64,000 nt of DNA from Anthoceros angustus (Eukaryota > Plantae > Anthocerotophyta). Positions within the stretch are counted from its first letter, which is position 1, and each line of letters begins with the position of its first letter. Below the pieces are notes generated by a model, which made no database searches, had not been told where the DNA came from, and saw only the letters and a program-made list of their open reading frames with translations. The translations under genes were made by a program, and so were the position numbers. The stretch spans positions 1-64,000 of the forward strand of contig VJWM01000107.1 of the NCBI GenBank assembly GCA_010909165.1, written 5' to 3'. Below are positions 10,226 to 39,785 of the stretch, piece by piece.

Positions 10226-10599
10226 AACATGATAATGAAGGGTTAATATGAACCCCTTCCACACTTTCAAAACCCTTCACAAAAGACACTGCTCCTTAAA
10301 ATGCGCAATATGCTTAATCCAAATCCGCCAACAAAACCGTTGTATTTTGCCTCGGAAAATTAAGATTCAACAATCCATGAAACAAAAAGGGCTTTGTTGG
10401 CGCCGGCTGGTCGACGCCAGCCCGGAAACTTCCTTGCCCACGGCTATGGTTTGAAACAAGTAATGAAAGGAAATCATAATCTACAGCTTTAAAAACCTCT
10501 TACATCCCTCCAAAATAGTCTTCCCAGCCACAAAGATCCTCAAAGCGGACTAATCGAGACTCATACCGTGTTTGGGTGGCTTCAATCTAAAACAATCAC

Positions 10600-11000
10600 A
10601 AAGTTGCATGCGTTCTCCAATTCTACTTACGCTCGGTTACGCTGCCAGTAGCCTTCGCTTCATCATCTTCTTCGTTGTCTCCTTCCTCCTTGTCGCCACC
10701 ACTCCCAGATTGCCATTCAGTATCCAGGGTTTGTTGTCCTTCCTTAGCAAGTCCTCTGTTTGCGTTTTCATCCTCCTTGCACTAAGTGGAACAACCTGAG
10801 CCTTCAAACAATTTTTTTCACCGATACAAACTTCTTTAGCCCAGAACTGTGCTGCTCCTCTCAGGTGGGCATCGAATGTGAGCTCCTCTTTCCAGTCTGG
10901 CAAAACCTCAAAACCATGGATGCGTTGTGGGATATAACCAGCACAGCGGAGGTCAGCTTCTATGGCAATAGAATTGCGTCCAGAAAACAATGCTGCCAAT
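10600..11000 (-). pseudogene. C-terminal part of the element A methyltransferase (also duplicated at ~13100-13496)
   Basis: LAALFSGRNSIAIEADLRC...EELTFDAH...AKEVCIGEK is paralogous to element B's FLAATMRRNCIAIEGDLRC...AKEVCIEK. It joins in frame to GSGTTT at 29088. Confidence 0.8.
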
Positions 11001-11713
11001 AACACGATATCTTGTGAAGGGGGTGAATATCCGAACCCCCTTCTGTGATATGAAAACCCCCTTAGCACAATTCACACCGTCCCGAAATACGCGTTTTGGC
11101 TCTTTTTAAAAAAAGGTCGACCTTGTTCCAACGAGTAGGTATTGAGAAAAACTGTTATCGCGAACAAAGACATGAAAACGGTGCGAGGGCGCCGGCCGGC
11201 CGGCGCCTTTTCATTGATTCTTTGGAACATCCAAGAAGACATCAATTGCCTCATATATAAGGGAGCACACTATACTCATTAGGAACCTAACCCAGAATAG
11301 AACTCTACAGAAATAGTACTACCACTAATTCTATAATAATATTTTATGCAAATGATACTATGTGACTACACCACTCATTTTAAAGAATACTTTATTCTAA
11401 TAGTTTTTACTATTTGTAATACTTTCCAATTTAATTCTCCTTCCTTATTTCTCTTTTCACATATGTATGTACTATAATTGGCTATCGAATTAGACCATCT
11501 AGAATCTGTATGTATATTCAAGCTTTTTAGCATAGTATGTATCAATTCTTTTCTCGTGAGTGTAAAGTCCACCCACCCGCCTAAGACATGGTTGAGTAAG
11601 GAAGCATAAGCGGGGTGCCTCCAAGATGCCTTCTCGAGCAGTAGTGGCACGATTCTAGGTTATCATAGACTGTCACAACATTTTTACCAGTCGGCAATTG
11701 GATATCGCTAAAT

Positions 11714-12789
11714 ATGTTCCTACTCTTTGATGAAAAACAACCTACAAATCGAGCTTTTCTCGAAGATAAGGAGCAGTTCTCGGCTGAGATGGCATTCCGA
11801 AAGATGAGTACTTACCTCGTAGGTGAAGCGTTGATGTGCTATAGGGAGGTAAAGGAAGAAATCCAGGAGGAGGCAAAGGATTATGCCCACCGAGCACACA
11901 TGAGGCAAAGAATGAAGTCGTCGGTGGATGTAGAGAAAATCTACATAGGAGACTACGGACGAAGAAGTGATGCCAATAGACTATCTGGTAAACTTGGTTT
12001 TTGGGAAATTCAAGGAGATGTTTCCCAGTTCTTCTTCAAAGAAAAGTCAGGAATTGTCTCATTTTTCCTTCAAGTCCGGAAATCGTATATATGAGGCTGA
12101 GATAGTTGGTAGCTGATATTGATGTGAAGACCATGAGGGAAGCTACTGAAATTTTCATTACGAATGAATTCTGATTGTAGAAAAGATCCGACGTGCATAT
12201 GTTTCATGGAGAAGCAAAGGAGTCTGCTAAGGATGCAGAAAAATCGAAAACAAAGGGCAGACCTACAAGGCAGGCGCTCATGAGCCATTTGCAGAAGGAG
12301 CTGTCTCGAAGCATGACTATGTGCTATGAAGAAGCACCCAAGGAAGACTCAAACTCTTAAGAAGAGTTATATGCCTTGGTAGCTAGGAGGCCAGTTGAGA
12401 CGTGCAAGAATGCCACAGCCGATCTCGATGTAGGGATCACTGGGAAGGTGGCAGAACCGCGTGACCAGCCAAGAATGCCAAAGTCATTCAGACAGCTGGA
12501 TGGTGAGGGCACGGACACGGAAAGCGATCACAGTGCATGAGTTGTTACCTTAAAGAACAACTCCTCAAAACCAAGTGATGTAGGCGTGGATCCGTGCCAA
12601 GACTTGTGGTGGTGATTCTGTAGGTGGAATGCTCAGCTTAGGTGGGGATCACTTGAAACTAGGTGCTAAAGGACAACGCGGAGTGGCCATGGTGGCCAAC
12701 GCAACTCGAGACATCACCTTTGATGGCTTCGCTCCGAAAAAGGTGCTTATGGACATTGGAGCAGATCCAGTCCTGTTGGGAGCACAAGT
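11714..12789 (+). pseudogene. Ty3/gypsy gag and protease N-terminal remnant (copy 2), interrupted by element A
   Basis: ORF 11714-12094 carries the gag-like RKMSTYLVGEALMCYREVKEE. KVLMDIGADPVLLGAQ ends at the AAGT TSD (12786-12789). Confidence 0.75.
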
Positions 12790-13499
12790 AACATGATAAT
12801 CCTGGAAGGGGGTTAATATATGAACCCCCTTCCACACTTTCAAAACCCCCTTCACAAAAGACACTGTTAAATTAATATGGCGAATCCAACAGACATGCTA
12901 AAAACCATTTACCTCGGAAAATTAAGATTCAACAATCCATGAAACAAAAGGGCTTTGTTGGCGTGGCGCCTTGACTCCTTGCCACCGGCTATGGTTTGAA
13001 ACAAGTAATGAAAGAAATCATAATCTCACGCTTTAAAAACCTCTTCGTCCCTCCAAAATAGTCTTCCACAGCATAAAGATCCTCAAAGGACCATCGGACT
13101 CATAACGTGCTTGGGTGGCTGAATCTAAAACAAGCTGCCGGGTTGCGCATTGCTCCAATTCTACTCACGAAGCCGCCGCGAGCCTTCATCATCTCTTCGT
13201 CTCCTTCCTCCTTGTCGCCACCACTCCCAGGATTGCCATTCAAGATCGGGGTTTGTTGTCCTTCCTTAGCAAGTCCTGTTTTGCGTTTTCATCCTCCTTA
13301 CACTAAGTGGAACAACTTTGAGCCTTCAAACAATTTTTTCACCGACATAAACTTCTTAGCCGTGCCTGCTCCTCCGGTGGGCATCGAATGAGCTCCTCTT
13401 TCGACTGCAAAACCTCAAAACCATGGATGCGTTGTGGGATATAACGCACTGAGGTCGCCTTCTATGGCAATAGAATGGCCCGGAAAACAATGCAATAAC

Positions 13500-16460
13500 A
13501 CGATATCTGTGAAGGGGTGAATATCGAACCCCTTCCGTGATATGAACCCCTTAGCACATTCACACGATTCCCAACAGCGTTTTGGCTCTTTTTAAAAAAA
13601 GGTCGATTTTGTTCCAACCAGTAGGTATTGAGAAAAACTGTTATCGCGAACAAAGACATGAACGCGAGGCGCCGGCCGGCCGGCGCCTTTTCATGATTCT
13701 TTGGAACAAGGGAAATCAAGACATCAATTGCCTCAATGCAGCGGGTCCATAAGTGATTGCGAACTAACAAGCGCAGATGCACATGACATGAGACCACTAA
13801 GCCTACTCCCTAAGGCTAACTTGGGACGTCCGGGTAGAGCAAACTCGAATCCATCACAATAGCGATTTCAATGCGCCCACTTCCTCTTCATCGAGCTTAC
13901 TGCCTCCCCAAGGCCCTAGTGTCTTCGCTAGTCTTGTGTCATCGTTGTCGTGGGAACGCCAAACACTATCCAAGGATTGTTGTCCCTCCTGTAAAGTGCT
14001 CCAGCTTTTGGTCTTCACCGCATGCTTAAGGAAACAACTCGAGCTTGTGGAGTCCTTCTCGATACACACCTCCTTTGCCTGAATTGCGCAAGTCCTCCGG
14101 TGGGCGAAATGTCGCTTCTTCTTCAAGATCGCGTAACCTCATGCCCAAACTTTGTGCAATATATCCCGACACCTCAAGTCGCCTTCTATAGCAATACAAT
14201 TCCGTCGCATAGTAGCCGCCAAGAATGTTGTCCCACTCCCAGAGCATACATGCAAAATCCAATCCCCCTCTCTCGAGAAGGTTCGGATAAGTTTCATCAT
14301 AAGGCCCAGAGGCCTCGTATGGGCAAACCACCACTTGTCTTGGGACATGTACACTGCTTTCTTCACAACCGTATCGTGAGCGATCGACCTCCATTGTTGA
14401 AAGTGCCGTGCATGGCATTGGGCATCATTGGAACTCTATCCTGTGAACCCATCTTTCATTCCCCAACCCATCGTGACATATTCCACGGTTCAACCCACCT
14501 TCATTGTTCATGTTGGTCTTGTCCCATACAAATGAGACCAAGCCCCTTTCTTGCACCACCTTCGCATGGACTCCCCGACGGTGAGCCTCCTCCACACCAT
14601 GCATGACAATCATTCTCAACTCATCGGAAGTTGTTTTCCGCAAAGCTCGCAAAAGCTGTCCATCATCCGCTTGTCAACGTTTGTCCAAGGGCCCAAAAAC
14701 CCCTTGAACGCCCATCACCAGTGTGTATCGGCCCTCTCAAAATCCACGCATGTCTACCACATCTCGGCTTTCCACTTGGTATTGCACTTGCTTATCCGAG
14801 GAGGGCACACTGAACACCTCCAGTCCTTCCTCAAGGTCCTTGTCCGCCAAAGCACGCTGCTCGTCCTCCAGCCCTTTCCAATTGTTCACCTCAAAAATAA
14901 AATGCTGAAAGACATCTGGAAGTTTGGACAAGACCTCAATGTCCTTCAGTTGCTGCGAACCACAAGTTTGTTAATCCAAAGTGGGAATGACTCCTTGCGT
15001 ACAGGCATAGACAGGAAACTCACCTTTCCAGCAAAAGCAGTCTGAAACCGCGACAGCATTTGGTCTGTGGAATGCAACGGATATTCCTCTCTGACCTCCT
15101 CAAATGAAGAGCACCCTGTGCTTGACCATCGCCACTTGTATGACATGAAACTTCTTCCGCGTGATCTCCTCATCCATGCCCTTCAAATCAATCGTGCTTA
15201 ACACCTTTTCCGTCATGCACTGACTGCCGACCGTGACTCTCCACCGTATGCCTTGAACGATTTCCATGGCTTTGCCAACATGTCCTTCACGTACATGGTC
15301 CATTTGCTTCGCCTCCTCAACTTATGCCTTTCCCTTTCTTGCTTGTTCTCACCGGTAGATGCTTCTTGCTCCGGAGTTCTCCAGCCTCCCACTTCGAGAA
15401 AATAGAGTCTACATTGGCCCACACCTTTCCTTCCTGCTTGGCAATGCATAAAATGTGTGTGCGGTTATCCACTTTGTTCTGCTTATACACATCGTCTTTG
15501 CGCCCTTCATCATCCTCAATCAGCCCAAGCACCTTGCATGATTGTACTTCCATGCCATTGTCATCTCAGACCTTCTCGCTTTGCTATCAAAAGCTCATCT
15601 CTTAAGTATCGGACCCGCTCAATGAAGTTCATCTTCTTCCGCTTGTCCGATAGTTGTGATCGCAAGGACTCGCATTTACGGTATAGTAAGCCCGCAATAG
15701 ACATGCGCTTCAACATATTGGAACCTCTTCTTCCCCGGTGATATATCGCATAGATGTTTCATGGTCGCATAAGTGTGGTTCCCACCAAGAACCCCATAAC
15801 ATATTTTTTCCGCCATCTCTTCCACCAACTTGTCGAGGTCATTGCACTCACTTGGATCAATCATACATAGTGGCAATACACCCTCTATCCTCCCTTCGAA
15901 ATAACTCGCCAGATAATTGGCCCATGCCTCCAACCTGCGAATGCGATCCGAATATGCGTCGGGTCGAAGTTCTCCAATTTCACTAGCACTGTCTCCATGA
16001 CAACCTTCTTTCCGTAAGTCAATCCCTTAGTGAGTCAGATCCATCATTCTTCATCCGCTGTCAAAATATGCATGGGAATGCCACCAAACACTTCCTCTTG
16101 TGCCGCGCCTTTTTGATTTCTTTTCTTCCTCGCCTCGTGCTTCCACTGGGTTTCTTCGCACCCTCAGGAATCCAACACCGCAGCAGGCGCTTGCCCTCGC
16201 GCCTCCTATCTCTCCCAGGAGAGGCGGGCCGGGCCGCGCCCGCCTTCTTCCTCCCGTCCATACCGTGTCCCCCCGCACCCACTTCCTCCTCTGCCTCCAA
16301 CGTCGGCACCTCTTCCTGCGGTCCAGTGGAAGGGCTCTTGTGGATGGAGGTATGCCGGCGGCCGGGCGCATATCTCCTTCCCCGGATAAACCGGTTGGGA
16401 TCCGAGTGGCCAAGTCCAGCTGCACTCTTCGCTGGCGCCGGCCGCCGCTACCTCTCGGCA
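13500..16460 (-). pseudogene. ParB-like domain + beta-class N4C/N6A DNA methyltransferase fusion of element B (frameshifted)
   Basis: ParB-like YGVLGGNHTYATM...VYCGL (15676-15933). MTase motifs VSFVWDKTN, RPLGLMMKLIRTFSREGDWILHVCSGSGTTFLAA and RNCIAIEGD (14139-14650). Both outer boundaries are approximate. Confidence 0.75.
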
Positions 16461-18799
16461 TTCACTACATCCGTGCACACTCATAGATGGCCCATGCCAA
16501 GCTGGGTAAAATTGCCGCATCCCTATCTTCGCCCCTGCCCCGAGACTTCATCATCGGAATGTCCCAAGACGTGAATCGGGCCCTCTTCCTCATCGGATGG
16601 GCCAAGTTCGCCTGGAAGTCTGTCTGCCCGCCGCCTTCAACCATTCTTTGATGTGTCGACCCCTTCTCATCGATGCCTCTCCTATGATCAATGACGCCTC
16701 GGTTATCTTCCACAGATTGCCCTTATAAGGGCCATTCCTACCAAAGGTGGTCGGAAAACAAACAAACAAGTTGAATGTTAGTCATCAAAGTCGAGGGTTT
16801 TGAAGTCACAGTCGTTGTTGGAAACTTACGTAGGCGCATGCATTCGCGAACTCTTCCACTATTGCCGAGGTGCACATTTTTGGCGTTGAACTTTGAGGTC
16901 GAGAACATAAGACCAGAAACTCGGGTCCCGGATGACGCATCGAACTCGTATGGCTCGGTGGTGCAATAGCGTGAACTCCGGCCCCCTCGCTCATGTCCAT
17001 GTTTGCCCAGACACCAAATTGCTCTCCGATTTGGCAAAGCCCCGATACCCCATTATCCGTAGTTTTAGCAAGGGGTCCATGCCGCTTTTCAACCTCCGGT
17101 GCGGATCCCGGACTAGCATCCAATTTCCACAATGACAATAGGGTCTATCCGCCACCCTGGATGTGCAGCCTCTCATAGCGAATGGCGACAATTGGTGCAC
17201 CGGATGCTTTGAAGCCTTGCCTCCTCCTTCCCAGCTCCTTGCCCGCCACCGCCTGCTCGCTTGTTTTCCCAAGACATGCTCCCGGATTTTGCTTGCCCAG
17301 AGGCTATATGGCCCCCACCCTCCGAATGTGCCTCCCAAACTTCCTTCCAGCCGCCTTCCTCCGATCGCGGAACCTCGGCGATTTAGCGGATGTCTTGGTC
17401 TCGTGAATCCTTTGCCGCCGCATGGATCGGAGGATCAAGAATCGCCTCGCCAGTCCTTCTTGCTCCGCCTTCCGCTCGCCATCTTTAAGAATGAACTCAG
17501 ATCACAAGACATCACAAATTTGGAAGGCGAAACAATTGTTTCACATGGAAGTAGAACGAACCTCACTCGCAGACCGCCGATTGATGCACCCGAGGAATGC
17601 CCGGCCTGCCTCCCCAACCCCGAGCCCCCGCCTGATAGCCGAAATCCCAGGCCAAGGGAGGATTCGTGGAATTGTGGACTGACACCTCCTCCAAATCGGG
17701 CAACACCGCCAGACACGCCCTCATATTTCCTCAAGGGAAGCGCTACGACGGCAAGTGGCAAGAGAAAACAAATAGTAATTAGGGTTTCCTCCCAACCGGT
17801 ATTTATAGCCCAAAAACATGCCCAATTAACTTATGCCAAGATATATCCATATACCCGATATAAACCACGTGAACCATAACCCTATTGACTTGGGTGATAC
17901 GGGGCACACTCAATGTGGACAATAAAAGCGGAGGACGCGATATGCCGTTAGATATCTCAGATCGTGAACTCCATCATGTCGTATTAGAGGAACATAATAT
18001 CCTACCCATCTATGCGCGACGCCTATCCATAAAGACAATGGCCATCTTCACCATTTTCCTCACACTCGGAGGTCTCTTCCAAGACCCGCCGGCGATGTGG
18101 TTTCAAACGACGCCAGTGTGGTTTCAATCGACGCTCTTCTACAAGTTGTGCGATACCATGTTGCGCCTCACCCACACCCCGCGCGAAGAGGTTTGAGTTC
18201 GCCCTTTTGGAAGGATTACTTGGTTTTCACCCCTATCTTGTTTTCGGATTCTGAGTTCTTAGTGCATCCGGTTGCGGATGAACAATGGGAAGAAGGTTTC
18301 TCTTCACAATGCGTGTTTCCGTAAAGATGGAGAAGCGAGTAGACTGTTGAAGCCACCACCCTCGAACTCGGGCATCCCCCGAGTGCTTTGCCATTCCCAA
18401 AGACGGTTGATAATGAAGGTAGAGGATGATTTTTCCATATGGGAACTGTGGACGCTAGTGTCATCTGTTGTGGGATTTTGATGCATTCTTCCGATATTGT
18501 TGTTCCAGACGCGCGAAGACGCCGCCAGCCTCGCCGCCAACTGGCCCCGCTGGTGTTCCTCCAACACCTAGGAATTTGCCAGAGTCGTTGAGGGAAGCCC
18601 ATCCAACCGACGCTCAAGCTTCCCGAATGTCGGGCGCTCCCCAGATACATCGACGCTGTTGCGGGTTTGTTTCTCGCGGACGTTGATCGCGTCGCCACCG
18701 TTGAGGAAGGTCCCATTGGCGACATGAAGATTCGAGCGTGTTCACCACCGATGCGTCGCTCCTTCCATCCCAAGCCTTTGAGTGAGTCTCAAGGCTCCA

Positions 18800-19560
18800 A
18801 CAAGGGCGCGTTATATCATCAAGAAGAGAAGTTGGAGTGTCGCTATAAAAGCAAGGGATACAATGATCGATTTCAAGAAGCCTTGTTGCATAAAATGTGT
18901 TTGCGGTTGGGGAAAGCGCGATTTCAAGAGCAACGTACCGCTTTCGATGGGGAGACAGAATGAGACATATCTCAGCCTTGTTCACCCATCGGATCCCGAG
19001 GTGATAGGGCGAAAGTGGTGACACATGTCATGGGGGCGACTCCTATGCGCTGCTGCTTGAAGGCTTTTAGAAGAGTACATTGTCTTGGCCACAGGAGGTA
19101 TGAGGAGCTAAAGAGCAGAGTCATTCGGGAATCACCTTGGGATGGATTTGAACCAAACCCAAGGCACACGACGATGCGATGGATGCCCTTTCGTGGATGG
19201 ACAACGCCACGCTTACGAGCGCCAAAAACTTGGATGTTTTAATCACCGACACGTATACAAAGTTGGAAATATGGACCTTGTGCGTCACAAAACTCTAACA
19301 CTCCACGTCATCCATGGTTCTTGAAACCGTGGAGAAGCAACTTCCCAACAAGAAAAATCAAGTCCAACAGTTTTCAACATGCTCGCTTATGCAGTCTCAA
19401 GAGCACTATCAGAACACAATGCACAAGGAAGATCAAGGTAATTTGCACCAATGTGTCCTCCATGAGGTTGTTCACCGCTATGGATTTGTTGACTACCCCG
19501 ATGGAGCGGATGTGCTCTTCCAATACCACCTGCTCATATGAGATGCATGTATGCATGTTC
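18800..19560 (+). pseudogene. N-terminal part of the element B transposase
   Basis: Cys-containing segments KPCCIKC, RCCLKAFRRVHCLGHRRYEEL and LKPWRSNFPTRKIK resemble the N-terminal region of DUF7869/Sola1-type transposases. Confidence 0.55.
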
Positions 19561-19619
19561 TATAACGTTTTGTGTTTGGTTTCCAAACGAAGGCTTAACA
19601 TGGGCGCCGCCCTATTTAG

Positions 19620-22600
19620 TGGTTTCCACGACCACGAAGCCGCTTGCTCACCCCCCCAATCGAGAGGCAGATTGAAGGCGCCACGGCCGCCTTCCCAAAT
19701 CCGGAAATGTAACTGGAGTGTGGATGGCGGCCGCCCCGGGCCCCAAATCCAAATGTGGGAGATTGGAGGGCGCGGCCGGCGCCCCACCTCCCCCGCTCCC
19801 TCTCTTATCTCGCCATGTATCCCCATGATGAGCGTCGCAAATAAGCATTCTGCATGTGAGGAAGTTTTGTTAAGGTCGGCGATGTCTGCTCATTTGGAGG
19901 GCCTAACGGATGCCGCTTTTGAGGATTTCTTATATTTCGACTAGGACATTTGTTTGTGGCATGTAGAAATTTCAGTCGCTTTGGAAGCACACTGCGCGGC
20001 GCCTCCAGAGCGGAGAAAATGTCTAAACACAGAGCAAGAGCTATGTGGAGCCACATATGCATATGTCCAGGGAGGTTCTCTTGACCCCAACCCTCTTTCT
20101 AGCGCTACACTTATCCTAATCGCTGGTTCAGACAAGAGGTTTCGCTCCCACAAGGAGTGGGGAGCCCTTCCTCGCACGATGGAGGGTGCCTCCCCGACCG
20201 ACCTCTCCGACTTCATCGACCTCCCGCAGCGCCGATCGACTAACCGCCTCCTACCGCCCGGTGACCCACCCTGAAGTCACACTACCCCACGCCACGATGA
20301 CTCTGCCTGGACTCGCCGCGAGAGGCACCGCCTAATCTAATGCCACCTTGGGACCCCCAAATCACCGTGACAAGGCAATCCTCCCACCAGCTCCTACACT
20401 CCCTAAGACCCTTCTCACAAATTTGGGGCCTCAAGCTCTTATCCACAGCCCCTTGAAATTTCAAATTTCCCCTCTCTTTTCTAGGTTTCTTCCTCCTCTC
20501 TTCTCTTTTTGTCTTTTTTCTTTCTCTTGCTCCTTCCTTCTCCTCTCTTGCTCCTATCCTCTCTAGCTCCTCTCTCGCCTCTCTCTCTCGCCTCTTCTCT
20601 TTCTTTCTCTTTCTCCTCTCTTCTCCTCTCTTCTCTAATCTACCTCTTCCACTCTTCCTAGCTAACTATCAGCCCTCACAGCCTCCCGGCAGCGCCTCGA
20701 GATCATAGGGGGCGGTGCCCTCACGGACCTAGGCGGACATTTGGCTGCAAGTGGCGTCCGCGTCTTTGGATTTTGCTAGGGGTCTTCCTTCACGGTCATG
20801 CCGTCACTTTGCCCACCTGCCGCTCCCTCACGCTCGAAGCTGCCCCTCCGGAAAGAAAGGTTTGGGCCCCGCCTCACCACAGTCACCGCACCTCAAGACC
20901 CTACCAGACACCATGCACCCTCACACGGTCGGCACGCACGCTTGTGTAGCAAAACAAGCACACACAGGTCAGGAGAGCAAGGCATGACATTTTATTATGG
21001 GAGCTCCTCCCCCTCTTATAGGAGCTCCCCCAAACCCTAGCATTAATTAAGTCTGGTGGGGTAGGTGGGGTTGCTTACGGTTTTTAAGTAGGTGGCCTCT
21101 TAAAAGGTTCTTAACCTACCTCCTAACAATCCCACTAACCCCCTAGGGGTCTTAATGACCCATTCACTCCCCTACCAACTATCTGCCTACTTCTTCTTGG
21201 CGTTGGCATGGCGGGCCAACCACCATCTTCCTCCTCTTGGCTTGGGGGTTGTCAGGATCTCTTCACTCGTCGGGACAGAACCTCCACACTGTCTCGGCGA
21301 TCTTGATTGATGGTGGGCGCGCCCCCTCTTGCAGGCGCTCTTGTAGAGGCACCGCCTCTGTAGCCATCTGTCTTGCCCCTTACCTTGGCGGTTGGGTGTT
21401 GGTGCAGCTCACATCCTGAGACACCCCCCCACCAACTCTGGAAATCTCTTCCTCTTCCATTGGCTCCTCCCACATTGAGCCTTCGCATCCATTTCACTCT
21501 CCAAGTCCCGAATCTCCGGGTTGAGGGCTTCCAAAATCTCCTTCGTGGGGACCCAACAACTTCCTTGTCAACAAGGCGCATCTCCTTGGCGAACTTGTTG
21601 ACCCTAGCATGTAAGTGGACCTGCATCTCCTGGCCCTTCAAACAAATCTCATCAAATTCCTCAGGCCACTCTCCGAGGCTATCTTACCATAGCATCCCTC
21701 TCAAGCGTCACCTCACTCAAAAGGCGAGTGACATTTCAGCATCTCTCTTCCATGCCTCCGGTATCCCTTGCGCCATGCATAATCGGCTGGGCGTTGCTTC
21801 TGACGACGGCACGATGCATCATTTTCCTCCGGTGGGCTACCTCTTCCTTCCACCGCTGGTCACCTCCGTTGCTTGCTTTATGAGCTCCTCACGCTCCTTG
21901 CTCCATGTGGCTGTCCTTCCTCCGGCTCCTTGAGCTTGGCCTCGATTCTTCATTCTTGGCTTGGCGGCCTCGGCCTCCCGGGCAGTCTTCATCGTCCCTA
22001 TTCTCCTTCTCGGCTGAAGAGTTCTTCTTGCCACTCCTTCCCACATCGGACAGTCTCCTCAATCTTCTGGTTGAGGGTAGCCACTTCCTTCATTCGCTCC
22101 CTACTTTCTTGTCTCGCCTGTTCTTCAATCTTGAGCCCCAACCTTCTCTCCAGGTCAACTAGGCGCCCCTTTGCCAACGCCATCTCCTTGATAGCCTTGC
22201 TATCCTTCTCCCCACTGTAGGGCAATCGCTTCGGCTGTCCTGACGACAGCTCTCACCTCCAACTCCTCTACTTCCTGTAAGGCTTGCTTCACTAATGGAG
22301 TGTCAATTAGCTGACAGATGGTCAGCAGATCCTTCAAAGCCTTTGTCTTCTCATTCCCCTCACAGGGTTGACTCATGCCTTTCTCTTGGTGGCGGTCTCT
22401 CCACTCGGTCGATGTTGGGTGGAACTCCTGACTCGGTCATCTCACAGGGTGGGTTAGTTCCACCACCGCTCCATGGGGTTGCCTCAGACACATGGTGGCA
22501 CGCCACCTCTTCCTCTTGTGCCCTTGTCTCCCCACAGGCGCAGGCACTTCTCCTTCCTTGGCGTCAGACGCCGGGGTGGTCTCATCATCCAAGATCACCA

Positions 22601-24345
22601 CCTGAGGTGAAGCACTCCCTTGCTCCACCTTGGGTTCCTCCTCTGCCTTCTTCACCTTCTTAGGGAGAGGGACCCCTGTACCGTCCCTCAGAGGGACCAC
22701 TTCAAACGGCTGGTAAGACTCCTCCAGCTCTTCTTCCGTCAGTAACCCATGTGCCCCCCATAATTGCACAAGGTAAGTACTCAAATGGCTATGTCTCGCC
22801 CCCTCATTGTCCACAATGTTTGGCCTCAGCAGCTTGTCTCGGTGATGCTCATAGGCCCGTGACATGGTCCCCGGTCGGTGAGCTCCTTGCTTGACTTCCA
22901 CATGAAATGAAAGAATGCCTTCTTGAAGTAGGTGGTTGGCAGTCGCCCAAAACTATCCTTGTAAAAAGCTTCCACTTGAGGTCAGCAATCTTATCATCCT
23001 CCGGCCATTCAGCGTCTTCGCGTCTACCCCTCCGATGAGCATGCTGAGAGCTTCCTCAGGAAGGTCACCACCACTGCTCTTTTTCCATCTTCATTCCTCT
23101 CAGTGGGAGCCACACCATCACTTTCGGCCTCCCATACACCTTCGAATGTCTTTGGGCGGTCCATCCCTTTGGATCTGTCCCGTCCGTCGGTCCTCTGTTT
23201 CTCCCTCGTCGATTCGGTGCTGTAAGACTCAACCAATTCCACATTAGAATAGGCCCAATGCCTATCGTAAACCCAGCTGCACATTTTGTGACAGCCTTAA
23301 TCCCATAAGTCTGGAGGAGACTTGCAGCTCTACAAAATCCTGGCCCCTCCTTCTCGGCGATCCTTCTCGGGCTTCTCCTTCGCTTTTCTTCTTCTTCTCC
23401 TTGGGCAGTCGCTCCCTCCTTCTTCTTTGGGCGCCTTGCGCACTCCTCCGGGCATTGCGCGTCTTCATCTCCGACTTACGGGCGGTCGATCTTCTCAAAA
23501 ATCCTTCCTGCATCGGTCGATTTTCTCCTCAAAATTCTTCTAAGTGTTCTCTTGGTCATCCCGCTTCCTCATCGCTCCGTCCTTGATCCTCGACCAACTC
23601 AAATGAGCTAAACACTCCCCTCTTACATATATAGGGTGAGGAGGATTTTCCACACCCAAAGGCCAAGGACGAAAATTTCCCTGTCCAGAAGGCCAAGGAT
23701 GGAATTCCTCCAGGCCAATTTCCCATTGCCAAAGACCAAGGAAGAAAAATCAGCGAGACATGCAAAAGGTCGACCACGCCACGTCATGACCCTAACCCGC
23801 CGGTTCGTCTTCCGTCTGTCCGAAACCCTCCGAAGGCCGAGGACAGCGCCTGATTTCCTCCTCCGAGCGCCAAGGACTTTTCTGCTATATATGCATGCAT
23901 GCGCTCCCTCCTTGGTGTTGTTGTGCCTCTCCTTCTCCTCGCGCGCTGTCACATCGCTCGCTCACCACCTCAACCTCGCGCGCGCAATTGCGCGCTTTCG
24001 CAGCTTCGAGACCCTCTCGTGCGTCTTCCGGTGGAGTAAGAACCTTACTCTGCATGTCGTTCAGGAGTGACTGGCGCCGCCGCCACGAGGCCCGGCACCA
24101 ACCCTCCTTTTGCGAGGTTCGGCCTTGCCTCCTACCTCCGTAAGTTCTTCCAACCCTCTGTCCGGACCTCCCGTGGGACCTCCGTCCCCTTCGTTGGACC
24201 CGTTTTGAATCCGTTTTCCTCCATCCATCCGGTCGGTCCGCTGTCTTCTCCATCTCACTCTTCGTTCTTTGTCTTCCGTCGGTGATCTGTTGATGAAAAA
24301 GAAAAATAAAGAAAAATGAAACCTAACTAATATGAACAAAACTAG
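19620..24345 (-). mobile_element. ~4.7 kb insertion splitting the element B transposase; probable LTR-retroelement accessory-ORF remnant
   Basis: Transposase-like sequence stops at ~19600 and resumes at ~24365. The interval has decayed minus-strand ORFs with coiled-coil (EEQARQESRERMKEVATLNQKIEE) and HLSTYLVQLWGAHGLLTEEE segments. No termini or TSD were resolved. Confidence 0.45.
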
Positions 24346-24364
24346 GAGGCATCCGCCTCTGTTC

Positions 24365-27300
24365 TAACCGTGGACCCAAAATTTGGCGTTCCACACTGCT
24401 GTTCATAGATGGAATGGACCAGAAAAAGACAGAGATTCCTCATCTTCTCCGGTGGCCGAAAAACCTCGTGAGAGGTGTCGTATTCGATTACGTGGTTGGG
24501 TGTATGATTCACAACTACACGCTGGCGAGCCTATTTGCATTATCGCAATTCTGAAGCAGCCGAATCGACCATCACCATCATTCAGGACGTTATACATAAT
24601 TAGGAGGGGGTGCTGCCAAGAGTTTTGTATTTGCAACTGGACAACACATGCAGGGAGAACAAGAACCAGCTGCTTTTTGCATATCTGAACATGCTTGTTG
24701 ATATGGGTACTTTTGAAAAAGTGAAAGTGGGATTTCTTTTGGTCGGGCATACGCATGATCAAATCGACCAGATGTTTTCTTGCTTCTCCAAAAGCTTGAA
24801 ACATAAAGAAGCTCACACCCTGCCCGCATTGTCAGAGATCTTGATGCATGCGTACACTCGTCACAGGTAAAGATATTGGTAAGTGGCGGACTTCGGTCAT
24901 ATGTGTGGCCTATTAGACAAGGCGAGAGGCCTCACTTATGGAGCTACGAAAGAGATTGAACAACTTATCGCTCCAGACCCGCTTAAAATAACGTGAAGAG
25001 AAAGCGGATCGGGGTTTGTGATTATCGAGCAAGCGATTCCACCAAGACAATGGGAAACGGAAGGGGTTTGAGTTTCAAATTTGTCCTTCCGACACTATGT
25101 AACAAATGGCTTTCACGTGACCGCCAAGGGATAAAAGGAACACAGTGACATTATCACCAATCGCAGCCATTGCCCATCTTAAGGATGGTCTTTCGAACTT
25201 AGGCCTTATGTGACATCACAGAGTTTTATGGTGGGAAGCTCGTTGGACCAAGAGGAGATTGTTGTTATTGTCCAAAACAACATTGGCCTTGTGCTACGTA
25301 ATCCTTGGAAATGGTACTCAAGATCGGAAGTGGATGCACAACCTCTCCATGTTCCGGATGTGGCAAGGCCGGAGGAGGCATTGCTAAGGGACCTCCCACA
25401 ACGAGATATGTATTTGGGAGCATACCAAACACGGGAGGCAAATAAAGTGAAATGGCACGGTGGAATGGTGATATCGCGGAAATAAAGACAGGGATGTTTG
25501 TTGTTCCGGACACGACACGAATAATGCACCCTTTTGGATTGGGAAGATCACTGCTCAATTGCATCGCCATGACCTCACTTCCTTGTTCATTGGTACGTAA
25601 TCGAACACAATGATGCAAAGGGAAGTACGAGAAGAATATTTAATCGGAGGGATGCCACAGACTGCGAGCAATGCGGGAAAAGGGGCGAAATCCATCCATC
25701 AAAAAATATCCAAAAGGTTTTTGTTCACTAAATCACATCCTCTATTATGGGTTCACATTGACTACGCGGAGACACTTGTACTGTAGATAAGAAGGCAATC
25801 AAAGAGAAGTTCATTGAGTTGAGAGGCTTCATTCAACCAGTGAAAGTCCCACCGAGGATAGTGAAGATGATGGTCATGATGCCGACCCAAATAAGATGAT
25901 GGAGTGGCGTCGAGAAGAGTAGAAAGCCCTCGAATGTTATGTCATCTTGCGGGGCGATCTTGGGAGGCTATTCGTGTACCTCAAATCCTGCAGTTTGGAG
26001 TGCACATTTGACATATGTCTCAAAAGAGTGTAGGCCCATGATAGAATATTGTTGTTCTGCTTCTCAGATAATGTGACGCTACATGCTATAGAATTTTCAA
26101 GGCAAGCCATTTCCTTTACAAGCGGTAGGACATGGAGGAAGTATAGTAGTTAAGGGCTTGGCATTCGGCATATTGGCGAGCAACACATGTAGACCGCCGC
26201 ATGTTTGAAAGGATATGATTCATGAACTACCGCTCAACGCCTTCGCTTGCCGATTGCTTTTGGGTCTTAACAAGGTGATTATATTTTTGGGCTCAATTTA
26301 TGGTGTGCAAGCCACCCACTCACCCCAACATAGAGTCTTTGTGTACACACACAAGCAGGGCTTACCCGCCTTTTCCCAATAGTCGAGCAAACAGGAATGG
26401 CTGACTCCCTCAAACATCGTTCCTAAGCAATCAGTCAATCTCATCCAATTTACATCATTCTTTTATGAATGTTAAGGGTTTTCAAGGAAGACAGAAGGCG
26501 TGAGAATGGTCCTTCACATGGGTCTTAAATGCACCCAAATAGGGTTACCTGCACCTAACCCTTCTCCTGCAAGCACGGACCTCATGTCAATGGTTCACAA
26601 GATGTTCACCCTTCTTTTCCTTATATTCATTCATACCTCTATAACCACGAGTTGAAGACCCATGTCAAACCCCTTCGTGGGATATTTCCGTGAAACCCCT
26701 TCGTGAATATTAACCCCTTCACAAGATATCGTGGTTCGGTTGTAGTCCCATGAACAATCCATAATCCAATCTCCTTCTTTGGAGAATATTTTTGATGAAC
26801 TTCATCATCAACGAAGATCTTTGACGCACAAAACTGGTTTTGAGACATGTACATGCTTTCACCATAACAGGTTACGGTGTCAATGTGAGGATCGTATTGT
26901 TAAAAGGTTCATATATTAGCAAGTCGCTTGCTTCGAAGCCGCTTTTCCTTCACACGCACTGTGCCACCGTTATGTATCCATCTATCTCAAATCCACCTGC
27001 TATTACTCATGTTCGGTCAAACGTATGATACCATACCACCCCACATAATCACATGCACTCTCTCACGAGGTAAAGATATTGACCTAAGTGGCAGACTTCA
27101 TCATATGTGTGGCCTATTAGACAAGGCCGAGAGGACTCACTTATGGGCGGTCAGAAGAGATTGAACAACTTATCGCTCCAAAGACAGCTTTAAAATAACG
27201 CGTGAGGAGAAAGCGGATCGGGGGTTTGTGACGGTTATCAAGAGCAAGCAGTATTCGACCTCGCCACAATGGGAAACGGAAGGGGGTTTGGAGTTTCTGA

Positions 27301-28185
27301 AATTTGTCCCTTCCGACACTATAACAACAAGGCTCACCTGACCGCGTCAAGGGATAAAAAAGGAACACAGGTGACATTATCACCAACTGCAGCCATTGCC
27401 CATCTTAAGGATGGTCTTTCGGAACTTAGGCCTTATGTGACATCACAGAGTTTTATGGTGGGAAGCTTTACGGTTGGACCAAGAGGAGATTGTTATTGTG
27501 CAAAACAACATTGGCCTTGTGCTACGTAATCCTTGGAAATGGTACTCAAGATCGGAAGTGGATGCAACAACCTCTCCATGTTCCGGATGTGGCAGTGCTG
27601 GAGGAGGCATTGCTAAGGGACCTCCCACAATGAGATATGTATTTGGGAGCATACCAAACACTAGGGAGGCAACAACAGGAAATGGCACGGTGGAATGGTG
27701 ATGTCGCGGAAATAAAGACAGGGATGTTTGTTGTTGTTCCCGCGGACACAGACACGCATAACAGACCCTTTTGGATAGGGAAGATCACTGCTGTTCAATT
27801 GCATCCGCCACAGCCTCACTTCCTTGTTCATTGGTACAGAACTGAACACACAGATGCGTACGAAGGACGGTACGTAGAAGAATATTTAATCAGAGGGGAT
27901 GCCACGGAGCCTACGAGCAATGCAGGGAAAAGGGGAGCGAAGTCCATCCATCAAAAAAATATCCAAAAGGTTTTTGTTCACGAAACTGTCATCCTCTATT
28001 ATGGGTTCACCTTGACTACGCGGAGACACTTGTACGCTGTAGATAAGAAGGCAATCAAAGAGAAGTTAATTGAGTTGAGAGGCTTCATTCAACCAGCGAG
28101 TGAAAGTCCCACCGAGGATAGTGAAGATGATGGTCATGATGCCGGACCCAGCGAAGATGATGGTGTGGCGTCTGGAGAAGAGTAG
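24365..28185 (+). pseudogene. Catalytic core and C-terminus of the element B Sola1-like DDD transposase (core 24365-24870; C-terminus in 27070-28185, duplicated in 24866-25920)
   Basis: LFIDGMDQKKTEIPH (D at 24408), LPRVLYLQLDNTCRENKN (D at 24640) and FLLVGHTHDQIDQMFS (24745-24780). The C-terminal ORF 27637-28185 ends in an acidic tail. Confidence 0.85.
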
Positions 28186-29462
28186 AAAGCCCTCTGAATG
28201 TTATGTCATCTTCTAGGGGCGATTGGGGAGGCTATTCGTGTACCTCAAATCCTGCAGTTTGGAGTGCACATTTCGGAGCGCAGCACATATGTCTCAAAAG
28301 AGTGTAGGCCCATGATAGAATATTGGTTGTTCTGTTTTGCTGTATACCTCTGTAGACGTCACATGCTTTATAACTTTCGATGTGCAAGCCATTTTCCTTT
28401 ACAAGCGGTAGGACATGGAGGAAGTATAGCCGTAGTTAAGGGCTTGGCATTCCGGCATATTGGCAGGCAACACATGTTTAGACCGCCGGGCATGTTTGTG
28501 TGTGCGATATGTCGGAACTACCGGGCGCCAACGCTTCCCGCTTGTAGTCTTTGGGTCTTAACAAGGTGATTATATTTTTGGGCTCAATTTATGGTGTGCG
28601 GAAGCCACCCACTCACCCCACACCTAGAGTCTTTGTGTACACACGTGCAAAGGCCGCTTACTACCGCCTTTCCCAATAGGTCGAGCAATTGAACAGTAGG
28701 GCCGGCCGGCACCCTACTCCTCAGACATCCTTTGTTCCCAAGCAATCAGCGGGTTCGCATCTCATCCAATTCTGATCACCGTCCTTTTTATGAATGTTAA
28801 GGGTTTTTGTGCAAGGAAGACCAGCAGTGGCAGGCAGCAATGGTCCTTCACATGGGTCTTAAATGCACCCAAATTAGGGTTACCTCTTGCACCATAACCC
28901 TTCTCTGGCAAGCAATGGACCTCATGTCAATGGTTCACAAGAATGTTCACCCTTCTTTTCTGCCTTATATTCATTCATACCTCTATAACCACGAGTTGAA
29001 GACCCATGTCAAACCCCCTTCAGGGGATATTTCCCGCGAAACCCCCTTCGTGAATATTCACCCCCTTCACAAGATATCGTGTTCAGTGTTGTAGTCCCAC
29101 TTCCTGCGCAACAATCCATAATCCAATCTCCTTCTTTGGAGAATATTTTGATGAACTTCATCATCAACCCGAGAGATCTTTGGTACGGGCACACCACCAA
29201 CTTGTCTTGAGACATGTACACCTGCTTTTTCACCACAGTGTCATGTGCAATGACGGATCGTCCATTGTTAAAAGTCCCCTGCGTAATATTGGGCGTCATA
29301 GCCGCCCTTGGCTTCGAGCTGCCTTCCTTCACGCACCAGGCCACCGTTATGTACTCCACTATCTCAAATCCACCCCTGTCATTACTCATGTTCGTTTTGT
29401 CCCAAACGAAGGATACCATACCACCCTTGCCACATAATCCCCACATGCACTCTCTCACGAGG
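24866..29462. repeat. ~2.2-2.4 kb tandem duplication (24866-27069 / 27070-29462) crossing the right end of element B
   Basis: Both copies begin GGTAAAGATATTG..AAGTGGC and end CATGCACTCTCTCACGAGGT. The first copy holds an extra B right TIR (~26703-26733) and many deletions. Confidence 0.88.
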
Positions 29463-32400
29463 TGAGCTTCTTCCACTCCGTGCATGACAATGAGCCTGAA
29501 TTCATCCGCCGTTGACTTCTCTTGGAAGCTTTGGAAAACTGTGCTCATCATGCCTGCGTCCACCCGTCTATCCATGGGACCAATGTCCAAGGCTCTTGGA
29601 ACATCCATAACCAGAAGGGTATAAGCCCGTGTCGGAAGGAATCCCCGCATCTCCATAATGCTTCTTTTTCCACACAGTAGTAACATTCTTTCTCGGACCA
29701 CAGAGCGATGGCAGATCGATCCTTCTCTCAAATCCTTGTCAGCGATTGCACACTGCTCATCCTCAAGACTCTTCCAGTTGTTAATCTCAAATATAAAGTT
29801 CTTGAAATCCTTGGGCAACTTCTGCAAATGCTCCACGTCCTTTATTTGCTGAACGCCAGGTCAAGAAAAAACGTTAGAGCAGGGACACCATATGCCTATT
29901 GTCCACAACCAAGAGGCACCCGGGGACAAAGGAGGATGTGAAGGGCGCCGGCCGGCCGGCTCCCTTCACATCCTCCTTCTTCCCCCGGCGCCCTCCACGT
30001 CCTCCTTCTTCTCCTTGGATGCGGAAGAGCCTCATTTACTGGTTCACTGGTGCAGGACTGAGCACACAGATGCATATGAAGGTAGATACGTGGAAGAATA
30101 TGTGATTCGAGTCCCATCGACTGAGACAGCGGGGATTGGAAGGAAAAAGGGTGGGAAGCGAATTTCCCAAAGAATATTCAAGAAGTCTTCATCAATAAAA
30201 CTGTCATCCTGTATTATGAGTTCAGTTTGAATTCCCATAAACATCTATATTCCATTGACAAAAAGGCGATCGAGGATAAGTTGAATGAATTATGGGGCTT
30301 CATCGAGCCGGCCGGCCAAAGAAAGTCTGAAGAGCGGTGGCGATGACGTTGAGGACATCGGGCCCTTGGACGAGGAAGGTGTCAATTCGGGAGATGAGTG
30401 AAAAGGTTTATGAAGTGGAGGCAATCAGCGTTGGACATCGGTAGACAAGGGGGTTTATATACTGACTGTCCACTTGTGGTGACCGCCATGTTTTAGGGTC
30501 AAAGTGGGGAGCTCGCGTTAGTGATAGGGAATAACCTTTGGTACTATCCAACGGTCAGTGGAAGGTGAACAAAGTAGGAGTCACTTCTCCTGGAGGTAGT
30601 ATGCAGTGTCGGCGACATGGACATATGCAAGGGCGCCGGCTATCCCATTTTTAACCAACCTCTAGGAGAGTGGAAACCCTTTTCCGCACCAGTCCTCTGT
30701 ACTGTGCATGTTGTTCGTCAGACAGTATGAAAGCCCACCGTACAAATCCTCCATCGTGGGACCCCGAGAGTTCAGGGCACCGGCCCACCGGCGCCCTCAA
30801 CGGCCCGTGCCTGACAAAAACGACACACTAGGGGTTCTAGTCAGACGTTTGGGAAGTAAGCACCATTCTTTTCCACTAATGTAGAAGATTGCAGGAATGT
30901 CTTCAAAAGACCTTGATTGAGTTGAGAGGCTTCATTCAACCAGCGAAAGGAAAGTCCCACCGAGGATAGTGAAGATGATGGTCATGATGACACCAAATAA
31001 GATGATGTGGCGCCCAGAGAAGAGTAGAAAGCCCTCCGAATATGGTGTCATCTCTGGGGGATCTGGGAGGCTAGTTCTCAACCCAGCTTTGTCTCGCAAG
31101 ACATATGTCTCAAAAGAGCCCATGATAGAATATTGTTGTTCTGCTTCTCAGATAATGTGACGCTACATGCTATAGAATTTTCAAGGCAAGCCATTTTCCT
31201 TACAAGGTAGGACATGGAGGATAATTTTAAAGGGCATTCCGCATATTGTCTGTGCAACACATGTAGACCGCCGCATGTTTGAAAGGATATGATTCATGAA
31301 CTACCGCTCAACGCCTTCGCTTGCCGATTGCTTTTGGGTCTTAACAATGTGATTATATTTTTGGGCTCAATTTATGGTGTGCAAGCCACCCACTCACCCC
31401 AACATAGAGTCTTTGTGTACACACACAAGCAGGGCTTACCCGCCTTTTCCCAATAGTCGAGCAAACAGGAATGGCTGACTCCCTCAAACATCGTTCCTAA
31501 GCAATCAGTCAATCTCATCCAATTTACATCATTCTTTTATGAATGTTAAGGGTTTTCAAGGAAGACAGAAGGCGTGAGAATGGTCCTTCACATGGGTCTT
31601 AAATGCACCCAATAGGGTTACCTGCACCTAACCCTTCTCCTGCAAGCACGGACCTCATGTCAATGGTTCACAAGATGTTCACCCTTCTTTTCCTTATATT
31701 CATTCATACCTCTATAACCACGAGTTGAAGACCCATGTCAAACCCCCTTCGTGGGATATTTCCGTGAAACCCCTTAGTGTATATTAACCCCTTCACAAGA
31801 TATCGTGGTTCGGTTGTAGTCCCATGAACAATCCATAATCCAATCTCCTTCTTTGGAGAATATTTTTGATGAACTTCATCATCAACGAAGATCTTTGACG
31901 CACAAAACTGGTTTTGAGACATGTACATGCTTTCACCATAACAGGTTACGGTGTCAATGTGAGGATCGTATTGTTAAAAGGTTCATATATTAGCAAGTCG
32001 CTTGCTTCGAAGCCGCTTTCCTTCACACGCACTGTGCCACCGTTATGTATCCATCTATCTCAAATCCACCTGCTATTACTCATGTTCGGTCAAACGTATG
32101 ATACCATACCACCCCCACATAATCACATGCACTCTCTCACGAGGTGAGCTTCTTCATGTGCATGACAATGAGCTCATCCATGCTTCTTCTCTGGAAGCGG
32201 ACCTTTTTCATCATGCTCAAGGCCCAATGTCTATCCATGGGACCAATGTCCAAGGCTCTTGGAACATCCATAACCCGAAGGGTATAAGCCGTGTCGGAAG
32301 GAATCGCATCTCCATAATGCTTCTTTTCCACGATAGTAACATTCTTTCTCGGACCACAGAGCGATGGCAGATCGATCCTTCTCTCAAATCCTTGTCGGCG

Positions 32401-33477
32401 TTGCTCATCCTCAAGACTCTTCCAGTTGTTAATCTCAAATATAAAGTTCTTGAAATCCTTGGGCCTTCAAATGCTCCACGTCCTTTATTTCTTGAGCGCC
32501 AGTCAAGAAAAACGTTAGGCGAGGACACCATATGCCTATTGTCCACAACCAAGAGGCACGGGGACAAGGAGGATGTGAAGGCGCCCGCCGGCTCCTTCAC
32601 ATCCTCCTTCTTCCCCGCCCCTCCACGTCCTCCTTCTTCTCCTTGGATGCGGAAGAGCCTCATTTCCGCACGGTGACCCAGCAATCGGCATATGAAGGTA
32701 GATACGTGGAAGAATATGTGATTCGAGTCCCATCGACTGAGACAGCGGGGATTGGAAGGAAAAAGGGTGGGAAGCGAATTTCCCAAAGAATATTCAAGAA
32801 GTCTTCATCAATAAAACTGTCATCCTGTATTATGAGTTCAGTTTGAATTCCCATAAACATCTATATTCCATTGACAAAAAGGCGATCAGGGATAAGTTGA
32901 ATGAATTGCGGGGCTTCATCGAGCCACCACAAAGTGCAAAATCAAATGATGGTTGACGCGGATCATCTGCCCTTACTAGGGCGGCAAGAGATGGTGAAAA
33001 GGTTTATGAAGTGGAGGCAATCAGCGTTGGACATCGGTAGACAAGGGGGTTTATATACTGACTGTCCACTTGTGGTGACCGCCATGTTTTAGGGTCAAAG
33101 TGGGGAGCTCGCGTTAGTGATAGGGAATAACCTTTGGTACTATCCAACGGTCAGTGGAAGGTGAACAAAGTAGGAGTCACTTCTCCTGGAGGTAGTATGC
33201 GATGTCGACATGGACATATGCAAGGCGCGGCTATCCCATTTTAACCAACCTCTAGGAGAGTGGAATTCGCATTCCTACAGACTGCATGTTGTCGCCGACA
33301 AGAGTGAAAGCCCACGTACAAATCCTCCATCGTGGGACCGAGAGTTCAGCATACTAACGCGCACCAATTGCCCAGGCTCGACACGACACTGGGGTTCTAG
33401 CGACGCTTTGGGCGGCACCATTCTTTTCCACTAATGACTGTGAAGATTGCCTGGAATGTCTTCAAAAGACCTTGATT
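28069..33477. repeat. ~2.6-2.8 kb tandem duplication (28069-30918 / 30916-33477)
   Basis: Both copies start ATTGAGTTGAGAGGCTTCATTCAACC and end GTCTTCAAAAGACCTTGATT. An extra B right TIR lies at ~31780-31811. Confidence 0.88.
29088..29836 (-). pseudogene. Beta-class DNA amino-methyltransferase of element A, N-terminal part up to motif I
   Basis: Open ORF with permuted motif order LLVMDVPR (IV) ... FVWDK ... EYITVAW ... CPYQRSLGLMMKFIKIFSKEGDWIMDCCAGSGTT (X, I), matching the N6_N4_Mtase pattern. Confidence 0.85.
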
Positions 33478-33779
33478 ATTTAGACTGTATCTTGACAACC
33501 CCGTTCCCCTTTTGTTGTTCCGGGTACTTATGGTGAGCAAACATGGGTCGTATTATGCCAAATTCTGATGACCGAACTATGGCCCTCACCCTTTGTGTGA
33601 TGCAGCCACTGCTCCGGACAACGATTCCATCCATTATCCACCCTTATTTTGAGGCTTTTTTTGGAGCGATGTTGCCCAAAGCAACTGCATGCGATCCATC
33701 CCAAACCCCCTTCTGACCATATTTCGATGAAAACCCCCTTAGTGTATATTAACCCCCTTCAAGGATTATCATGTTAAGT

Positions 33780-33972
33780 GGAGGAGGCGCTCAAGCTGAA
33801 TGGCAGCAGATTAGTCCCTAGTGATGTGACAATTACGACTTCAGCAAGGATGAAAGAGTAGGTTTTGGGAATAACCAAGGAATCTGTAAAAATCAAATTG
33901 AAGCCAGGTACGCCAGATGCGTGTGTGGTTGAAGTTGATCAGTGTCTTGTCACGAGTGCAAGGACCTAGGAT
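33780..33972 (+). pseudogene. Continuation of the gypsy aspartic protease after element A
   Basis: Removing element A plus one AAGT restores an in-frame GAQVEEALKLNGSRLVPSDVTITTSARMKE*VLGITKESVKIKLKPGTPDACVVEVDQCLVTSART, with internal TAG stops. Confidence 0.8.
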
Positions 33973-33991
33973 GTCAGCAGATGTGACCCAT

Positions 33992-36135: not shown

Positions 36136-36138
36136 GAG

Positions 36139-36357
<219 letters not shown>

Positions 36358-39300: not shown

Positions 39301-39785
39301 TCGATTTTATGTCTATCTGTTTTATAATGGCTTGGAATAGTGGTGATCATATGCGTATGTGGAAAAACAGAGGATAAGGCTTACGATGATCTCGATTAGC
39401 AATCAGAACTTATCCGTAAGAGGTATTTGGATCCCAATTTATAAGTTTCTGTACACGGCCCGTTCGAGGGAGAGCAGAGTTCGCCTAGGAGTAAACGACT
39501 ATATGTGTATAGGGGGAAGCTAAGCGGAGCAGGGCCAGGTGAAGGACGTTGTGGGACTGTATATAAACGCTGGGCTTGCTTTTGTTCCGATGCGGATGTT
39601 CCCAATCAGAGGAAGCACGAGCCTCTGTTGTGAAGCGAGCCTTTGTGAAGCTTTTGCAACGAGCTTTGCAAGGAGCTTGTGTGAGACTTTGCAAGGAGCC
39701 TTTGTGTTGCCGAAGGCTTCACAAGGAGAGGGCTCGGTTAAGCTATTGCAGCTATTGCAGCAGCGGGCGGATCGCGGTAGTTCCG

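Follow-up and report, generated by a model that had tools for sequence, protein, structure and literature searches.

The window analysed here, a stretch of 64,000 nucleotides (positions 1 to 64,000 of contig VJWM01000107.1, assembly GCA_010909165.1) of the hornwort Anthoceros angustus, contains two nested transposable elements. The inner one, element B (13497-29083), is a dead Sola1 cut-and-paste transposon bounded by 30-bp terminal inverted repeats (TIRs), which carries a transposase on the + strand and, on the - strand, an accessory gene combining a ParB-like part with a beta-class amino-methyltransferase (MTase). It is inserted in the MTase gene of element A (12790-33775), a related but non-autonomous element.

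The right TIR of B (29054-29083, - strand), followed by the target-site duplication (TSD) CAGT, is complementary at 30/30 positions to the left TIR at 11001-11030, of which the left end at 13497 (13497-13524, + strand), preceded by the TSD CAAT, is an assembly twin two bases short. A TIR-bounded element with a 30-bp TIR and a 4-bp TSD, as described in an earlier note on this DNA, is thus confirmed, except that the left TIR has 28/30 bases and that the TSD is near-perfect, with one mismatch. When B is removed together with one TSD copy, the MTase frame of A is rejoined across motif I (GSGTTT-LAALFSGRN), which provides independent proof of both ends of B. A starts with a 31-bp TIR (12790-12820, + strand; assembly twin near 10227), preceded by the TSD AAGT, and stops with its right TIR (33745-33775, - strand), followed by AAGT; the two TIRs match at 30/31 positions (one mismatch) and the TSD is perfect. 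Its target was a degenerate long terminal repeat (LTR)-retroelement gag/protease region, present at 11253-12789 and 33776-34000, and removing A lets a retroelement protease-like frame, with a DIGA protease-like motif, read through the empty site. The two empty-site frames give the order of events: the retroelement came first, A landed in it, B then landed in the MTase gene of A, and an insert with TG...CA ends came last, inside B. Both sets of ends, their TSDs and the nesting order are thereby established.

A is an internal-deletion derivative in which all that is left of the genes is the MTase domain and the C-terminus of the transposase, joined by a 78-bp hairpin (29915-29992) centred on a palindrome shared with B (29944-29963). 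The arrangement with MTase on the left and transposase on the right, noted earlier for A, survives as remnants of both genes, but the ParB domain and the DDD core are missing. The left arm of A (12821-13496, - strand) holds the 3' part of its MTase gene downstream of motif I and subterminal GAAGGGGGTT-type repeats, with a better-quality twin at about 10227-11000. Without assembly duplicates and the insert, A measures about 2.8 kb and B about 9.0 kb rather than 15.6 kb, the length of B being inflated by the 4.35-kb insert and by about 2.2 kb of duplicated right end.

The TSD has 4 bp in A (AAGT/AAGT), in B (CAAT/CAGT) and in a related element of Riccia sorocarpa discussed below (TGTT/TGTT). Insect Sola1 elements prefer AWWT/AWDT targets (PMC3845634); the TSD of A fits AWDT, whereas those of B and of the Riccia element do not. 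For the Ectocarpus Sola1-1, the target is said only to favour a final A (PMC12477816).

The transposase, the accessory gene and their relatives

The transposase of B lies on the + strand in three parts. The N-terminal part (18592-20043), which is frameshifted, includes a CC motif, a CxxC-like FSTCSL motif and the helix before the first catalytic Asp. The DDD core (24396-24867) includes the three aspartate motifs (IDGMDQ, QLDNT..ENKN and GHTHDQIDQ), and its region 24604-24867 matches the Pfam family DUF7869 (PF25273, E 4.5e-36), a domain of which we found no mention in the literature searched. Over the second and third Asp motifs, 27/52 residues are identical, without gaps and counted by eye, to the curated transposase of the Ectocarpus element Sola1-1_Ec32. 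From these matches we assign the protein to the Sola1-type DDD transposases, in agreement with the earlier note. The C-terminal part (27075-28185) contains an open 183-codon stretch (27634-28182), and its remnant in A (30015-30400, + strand) shows 57% amino-acid identity to B. This C-terminus, retained in A and B, has the look of a small beta-barrel (Tudor/SH3/BAH-like, FW.G/AK...V.WY), as has the corresponding region in a relative (L015, 966-1400), without any significant Pfam match; it could be a chromatin-reading domain.

The MTase domain of B (14142-14970, - strand) is frameshifted, with motif I at about 14230-14260 and a damaged motif IV, (D/G)VPR, at about 14700-14720. The domain of A (29084-29860, - strand) was cut by the insertion of B; it stays open over 259 codons, in which motif IV reads DVPR and motif I DCCAGSGTT. 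PF01555 matches B above the Pfam cut-off (14142-14435, E 4.8e-7) and A just under it (29084-29860, E 8.1e-6). In the alignment, motif IV is N-terminal to the S-adenosylmethionine (SAM)-binding motif I, which is the circularly permuted order of beta-class enzymes. The family profile matches MboIIA and CcrM, which form N6-methyladenine (6mA), with E about 1e-13 in the PDB, as compared with 6e-7 for N4CMT and 1e-4 for PvuII, and the AlphaFold structure predicted for a DxPY member of the family (pLDDT, the predicted local distance difference test, of 89) matches the beta-class MTases CcrM, MboIIA and RsrI, all three 6mA writers (Foldseek E 1e-13). The amino-MTase fold proposed from the letters alone is thus supported.

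An exhaustive HMMER search found 23 relatives; a word-index homolog search with the MTase of A found nothing. Searches were made with the separate pieces, joined sequence serving just to read the empty-site frames and to build the tree. A contig labelled as human-gut metagenome (L036) was left out of all comparisons. Across the family, motif IV is mostly DIPY or DVPY, whereas it is DVPR in A, the damaged equivalent in B and DLPR in the four nearest relatives (P0001-P0004); DIPH is found in Ginkgo and DIPS in P0011. The aromatic fourth residue of the catalytic motif (D/N/S)PP(Y/F/W) is therefore present in the DIPY/DVPY (DxPY) lineages and absent from the DxPR group. A, B and the four DLPR relatives form one clade (support 97) in a quick maximum likelihood tree, whose rows for A and B contain short stretches read out of frame, the breaks of B being filled with X.

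In beta-class MTases, the fourth residue of motif IV stacks the flipped target base (PMC10406627), and changing SPPY into APPA, a double change, abolishes the activity of N4CMT (PMC8885841). The activity of the DxPR clade is doubtful, because its motif IV has no base-stacking aromatic residue, even though motif I is kept; from these motifs, we expect the domain to be probably a weak, dead or altered catalyst with a conserved SAM-binding motif. The idea that this lineage writes N4-methylcytosine (4mC) or 6mA thus stands for the fold and is in doubt for the catalysis. If the family is active, its profile matches make 6mA a likelier mark than 4mC. A first-position Asp in motif IV is not fully diagnostic of 6mA. 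No TE-linked member compared carries an SPPY motif, whereas the 4mC writers MpDN4MT1 of Marchantia (bioRxiv 10.1101/2021.02.12.428880) and N4CMT (PMC8885841) have (T)SPPY. The suggestion that such elements were the vehicle of a bryophyte 4mC writer is accordingly not supported by a comparison of motifs and profile scores, in which the family has DxPY/DxPR and scores nearer to 6mA enzymes.

Upstream of the MTase domain, B encodes a ParB-like N-domain and a helix-turn-helix (HTH)-like helical region (15030-16030, - strand; frameshifted), with a GGNH motif in the piece 15679-16026. The 5' exons of the gene, with a low-complexity N-terminus, and its promoter side probably occupy 16030-17800 (- strand). 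The window piece 15679-16026 has no Pfam match, and by sequence the ParB alignment retrieved nothing from the PDB, but the piece aligns with the family, and in a fold search with a low-confidence model of the N-terminal half built on relatives the top 12 Foldseek matches are all Noc/ParB/Spo0J, over both the N-domain and the HTH (best E 2.7e-5). One family member weakly matches HTH_ParB (E 8.6e-4), and the nearest Atlas clusters of the ParB part are AIPR/ParB. The N-terminal half is, as modelled, a ParB-N fold followed by an HTH, which upholds the ParB-like fusion of the earlier note through its relatives.

The MTases of A and B share 64% amino-acid identity while their synonymous sites are saturated (pS 0.90, pN 0.23), indicating that purifying selection acted on the protein during the divergence of the two families; a pair of DxPY MTases has a ratio of nonsynonymous to synonymous changes (dN/dS) of 0.05. 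In all four long contigs picked by transposase alone (L004, L005, L041 and L042), the ParB part lies head-to-head with the transposase, and one of them holds a whole MTase. The same head-to-head layout occurs in another genome (L002), and the Riccia sorocarpa contig (L043) contains a 9.6-kb element with both genes, TIRs starting with AA(C/A) and the TSD TGTT. Three contigs picked by MTase (L007, L008 and L015) have transposase sequence tail-to-tail with the MTase, including an open 672-codon transposase stretch in L015; with their DxPY motif and dN/dS near 0.05, they appear to be good candidates for intact, assayable elements. Relatives with a species name belong to Riccia, Adiantum nelumboides and Ginkgo, the last two being known from the MTase gene alone. 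In Ginkgo biloba, at least five ParB-MTase genes are annotated (P0007 and P0067-P0070), with motif IV DIPH where visible. The family had one weak match among viral contigs, and in bacterial and archaeal genomes the matches were only around motif I; no close donor among prokaryotes came to light, a negative of little weight. The selection between A and B, the 4/4 loci and the Riccia element make the ParB-MTase gene a conserved cargo of the family, linked to it across land plants, rather than a chance capture, as the earlier note had held.

A and B also share a perfect, GC-rich 20-bp palindrome (13668-13687), a candidate parS-like site, which recurs at 29944-29963 and 30776-30795 and has twins at 11188 and 10399, compared with 0 expected from shuffles. 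Degenerate copies end near 16240, 16451, 19783 and 28713. With up to 4 edits, 8 sites (some of them assembly twins) are inside the elements versus 0 in the other 40 kb of the window. In Riccia the palindrome is another one, of 23 bp, with 22 copies in the element and 0 in its flanks, and L002, L006 and L009 have 5-10 copies each of yet other palindromes of 16-28 bp. These sequences, mostly located in introns and spacers, are distinct from the TIR-like subterminal repeats. Their confinement suggests that they are candidate parS-like self-sites, specific to each family, of the accessory protein.

Possible roles of the accessory protein

We propose, with a probability of roughly 55%, that the accessory protein is a self-recognition factor whose ParB-HTH part binds the element's own palindromes and brings the MTase to the element. 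The ParB-HTH half would load on the 16-28-bp palindromes of its family, as ParB does on parS, and the bound protein would carry the MTase domain onto the element, where it would keep the element open or favour its mobilisation against host silencing by 5-methylcytosine. The mark would most likely be 6mA in the DxPY lineages; A and B belong to the DxPR clade, whose protein would act mainly by binding. Such a mechanism would parallel, with other protein parts, the logic of VANDAL elements, whose VANC proteins bind family-specific motifs in them (PMC5735166). A more general version, to which we hold only tentatively, is a land-plant-wide Sola1 self-recognition system in which each palindrome evolves with its matching ParB-HTH and targets an amino-MTase (forming 6mA in DxPY, a pseudo-enzyme or one of changed chemistry in DxPR), for the purpose of either anti-silencing or end-pairing.

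Several observations weigh against self-recognition. The model of the N-terminal half has low confidence (pLDDT 52) and was built on relatives and not on the broken window copy; L004 and L042 have only one or two palindrome copies; the palindromes may instead serve the transposase or have arisen by replication slippage; and no RNA run holding the stretch was found. The GGNH motif, moreover, differs from the nucleotide-binding box of true ParB CTPases, so that spreading driven by CTP cannot be assumed.

The missing aromatic residue also bears on a doubtful alternative, namely that the DxPR enzyme is an active amino-MTase with an unusual active site, marking the element directly with 6mA or 4mC, as the earlier note proposed. 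In this clade, purifying selection has preserved motif I together with the D-x-P part of motif IV, and further motif IV variants occur in the family (DIPH in Ginkgo, DIPS in P0011); nevertheless, the position affected is the one that stacks the flipped base (PMC10406627), the APPA double change inactivates N4CMT (PMC8885841), and DIRS1 provides a precedent for transposon-borne MTases without catalytic activity (PMC4738411). The location of the palindromes, near both ends of B and in the arms of A, would also suit a protein acting in transposition, with ParB-like bridging that pairs the ends of a 9-20-kb element or holds the excised intermediate, the MTase being a DNA-gripping module and no anti-silencing role being required. 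ParB genes do recur in giant DNA transposons of several superfamilies, but most Riccia palindromes are internal (in introns and spacers) rather than terminal, separate subterminal repeats already fit transposase binding, and many Sola1 elements of 2-3 kb have been described without such a gene (PMC3845634), which makes this role unlikely. That the gene is a functionless captured passenger, or the layout an assembly artefact, might be suspected because A and B are both broken and lie in a region with indel-rich duplications of long-read type. This view is largely refuted, and to us very improbable, because A and B have diverged to saturation at synonymous sites while 64% of their amino acids remain identical, because independent genomes show the same linkage, and because contigs from an independent run cover the left arm.

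Insert, duplicated blocks and other features of the window

The insert in B (20044-24395, - strand) has 4.35 kb and TG...CA ends, and interrupts the transposase immediately ahead of the first catalytic Asp. It shows no Pfam match, no LTR pair and no clean TSD; its minus strand carries broken, coiled-coil, gag-like frames. It is probably an LTR-retroelement fragment and may be a Tat/Ogre-like one.

Three tandem blocks of 2.2-2.9 kb (8677-11253/11253-13735, 24870-27071/27075-29463 and 28055-30918/30903-33477) consist of copies that are 81-86% alike, with 138-200 short indels each and about as many transitions as transversions. Because such indel-rich differences match the pattern of uncorrected long reads, these blocks are probably assembly artefacts. 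Two of the duplicates, both of lower quality, affect the elements on the + strand: 24870-27074 repeats the right end of B and its flank (TIR twin 26707-26735), and 30903-33477 repeats 28055-30918 (TIR twin 31781-31809). Given this kind of difference between the twins, we regard genuine tandem amplification of the element ends as unlikely. The extra TIR copies created in this way could mislead other findings in the same genome. Both genes of B are frameshifted in the window; contigs from one independent public run cover its left arm many times and supply missing bases, except between positions 16 and 19 kb of the window. Some of the frameshifts may therefore be sequencing errors, but the insertions kill A and B regardless.

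Elsewhere, the window contains a satellite-like array (1300-5900; at least 10 copies of GC-skewed degenerate repeats of about 200-400 bp), a long ATT/AAT-type microsatellite within a 209-codon frame (36126-36380), a hexokinase-like open frame with no introns and 64% GC (39576-41456), and, at 44360-49078, a frameshifted pentatricopeptide repeat gene of the PLS type, which encodes E and DYW domains and includes tandemly repeated units of about 300 bp. The last two genes mark the window as DNA of a land plant.

Comparison with known systems

The earlier note knew of no transposon built in this way, but Sola1-1_Ec32 of Ectocarpus has exactly this layout, with a 1104-aa ParB-like and N4C/N6A MTase gene opposite the transposase, for which its authors propose self-binding and self-modification (PMC12477816). 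It resembles our elements in its Sola1 transposase, its AAC...GTT termini, its 4-bp TSD and its accessory gene on the opposite strand, and its best Repbase match is Sola1-1 of Physcomitrella. It differs in being a brown-algal element of 21.5 kb with a 282-bp TIR, whereas B is a land-plant element of about 9 kb with a 30-bp TIR; A and B, moreover, have motif IV DxPR and are dead copies, the accessory genes being compared by description only.

In the Plavaka (EnSpm) elements of Bostrychia moritziana, PAG2/PAG3 comprise a PF01555 methylase and a ParB-like protein, and inverted-repeat arrays beside the ParB gene were proposed as ParB sites (bioRxiv 10.1101/2025.02.11.637652). These are likewise DNA transposons carrying a PF01555 methylase and a ParB-like protein, but with a transposase of another superfamily and with separate genes, ParB being fused to a 2-oxoglutarate oxygenase and the MTase to SET. 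Rotifer N4CMT and MpDN4MT1, like our family, are eukaryotic proteins with a beta-class amino-MTase fold that came from bacteria; unlike it, they are host genes with (T)SPPY that write 4mC, without ParB fusion, and are not transposon cargo. The chlorophyte-type Dam, an N6A-MTase fused to a ParB-type HTH, and the inactive transposon-borne MTase domains of DIRS1 (PMC4738411) belong to the unpermuted, M.TaqI-like group 2, whereas our family is circularly permuted, with motif IV before motif I. VANC of Arabidopsis VANDAL elements offers an analogy, as an accessory protein encoded by a transposable element together with family-specific motifs in non-coding parts, but it is an unrelated protein of the Mutator superfamily, and its activity is experimental whereas the role of ParB-MTase is predicted (PMC5735166).

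If self-recognition is correct, the ParB-MTase proteins would form a second, unrelated class of transposon anti-silencing factor beside VANC, and would offer a source for the disputed 6mA of plants as well as naturally targeted methylase modules. The more general version would mean that a bacterial partition-type clamp works in plant nuclei and that plants have an unrecognised, sequence-targeted source of 6mA. The DxPY enzymes look intact, with the DxPR clade as a natural comparison and the palindromes as candidate binding sites. The published layout is a one-paragraph prediction in a brown alga and is now placed in liverwort, fern and gymnosperm genomes, with the transposon context seen for Riccia. 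The layout itself was thus already known (brown alga, 2025), and the new points are its spread among land plants, the DxPR clade and the palindromes specific to each family.

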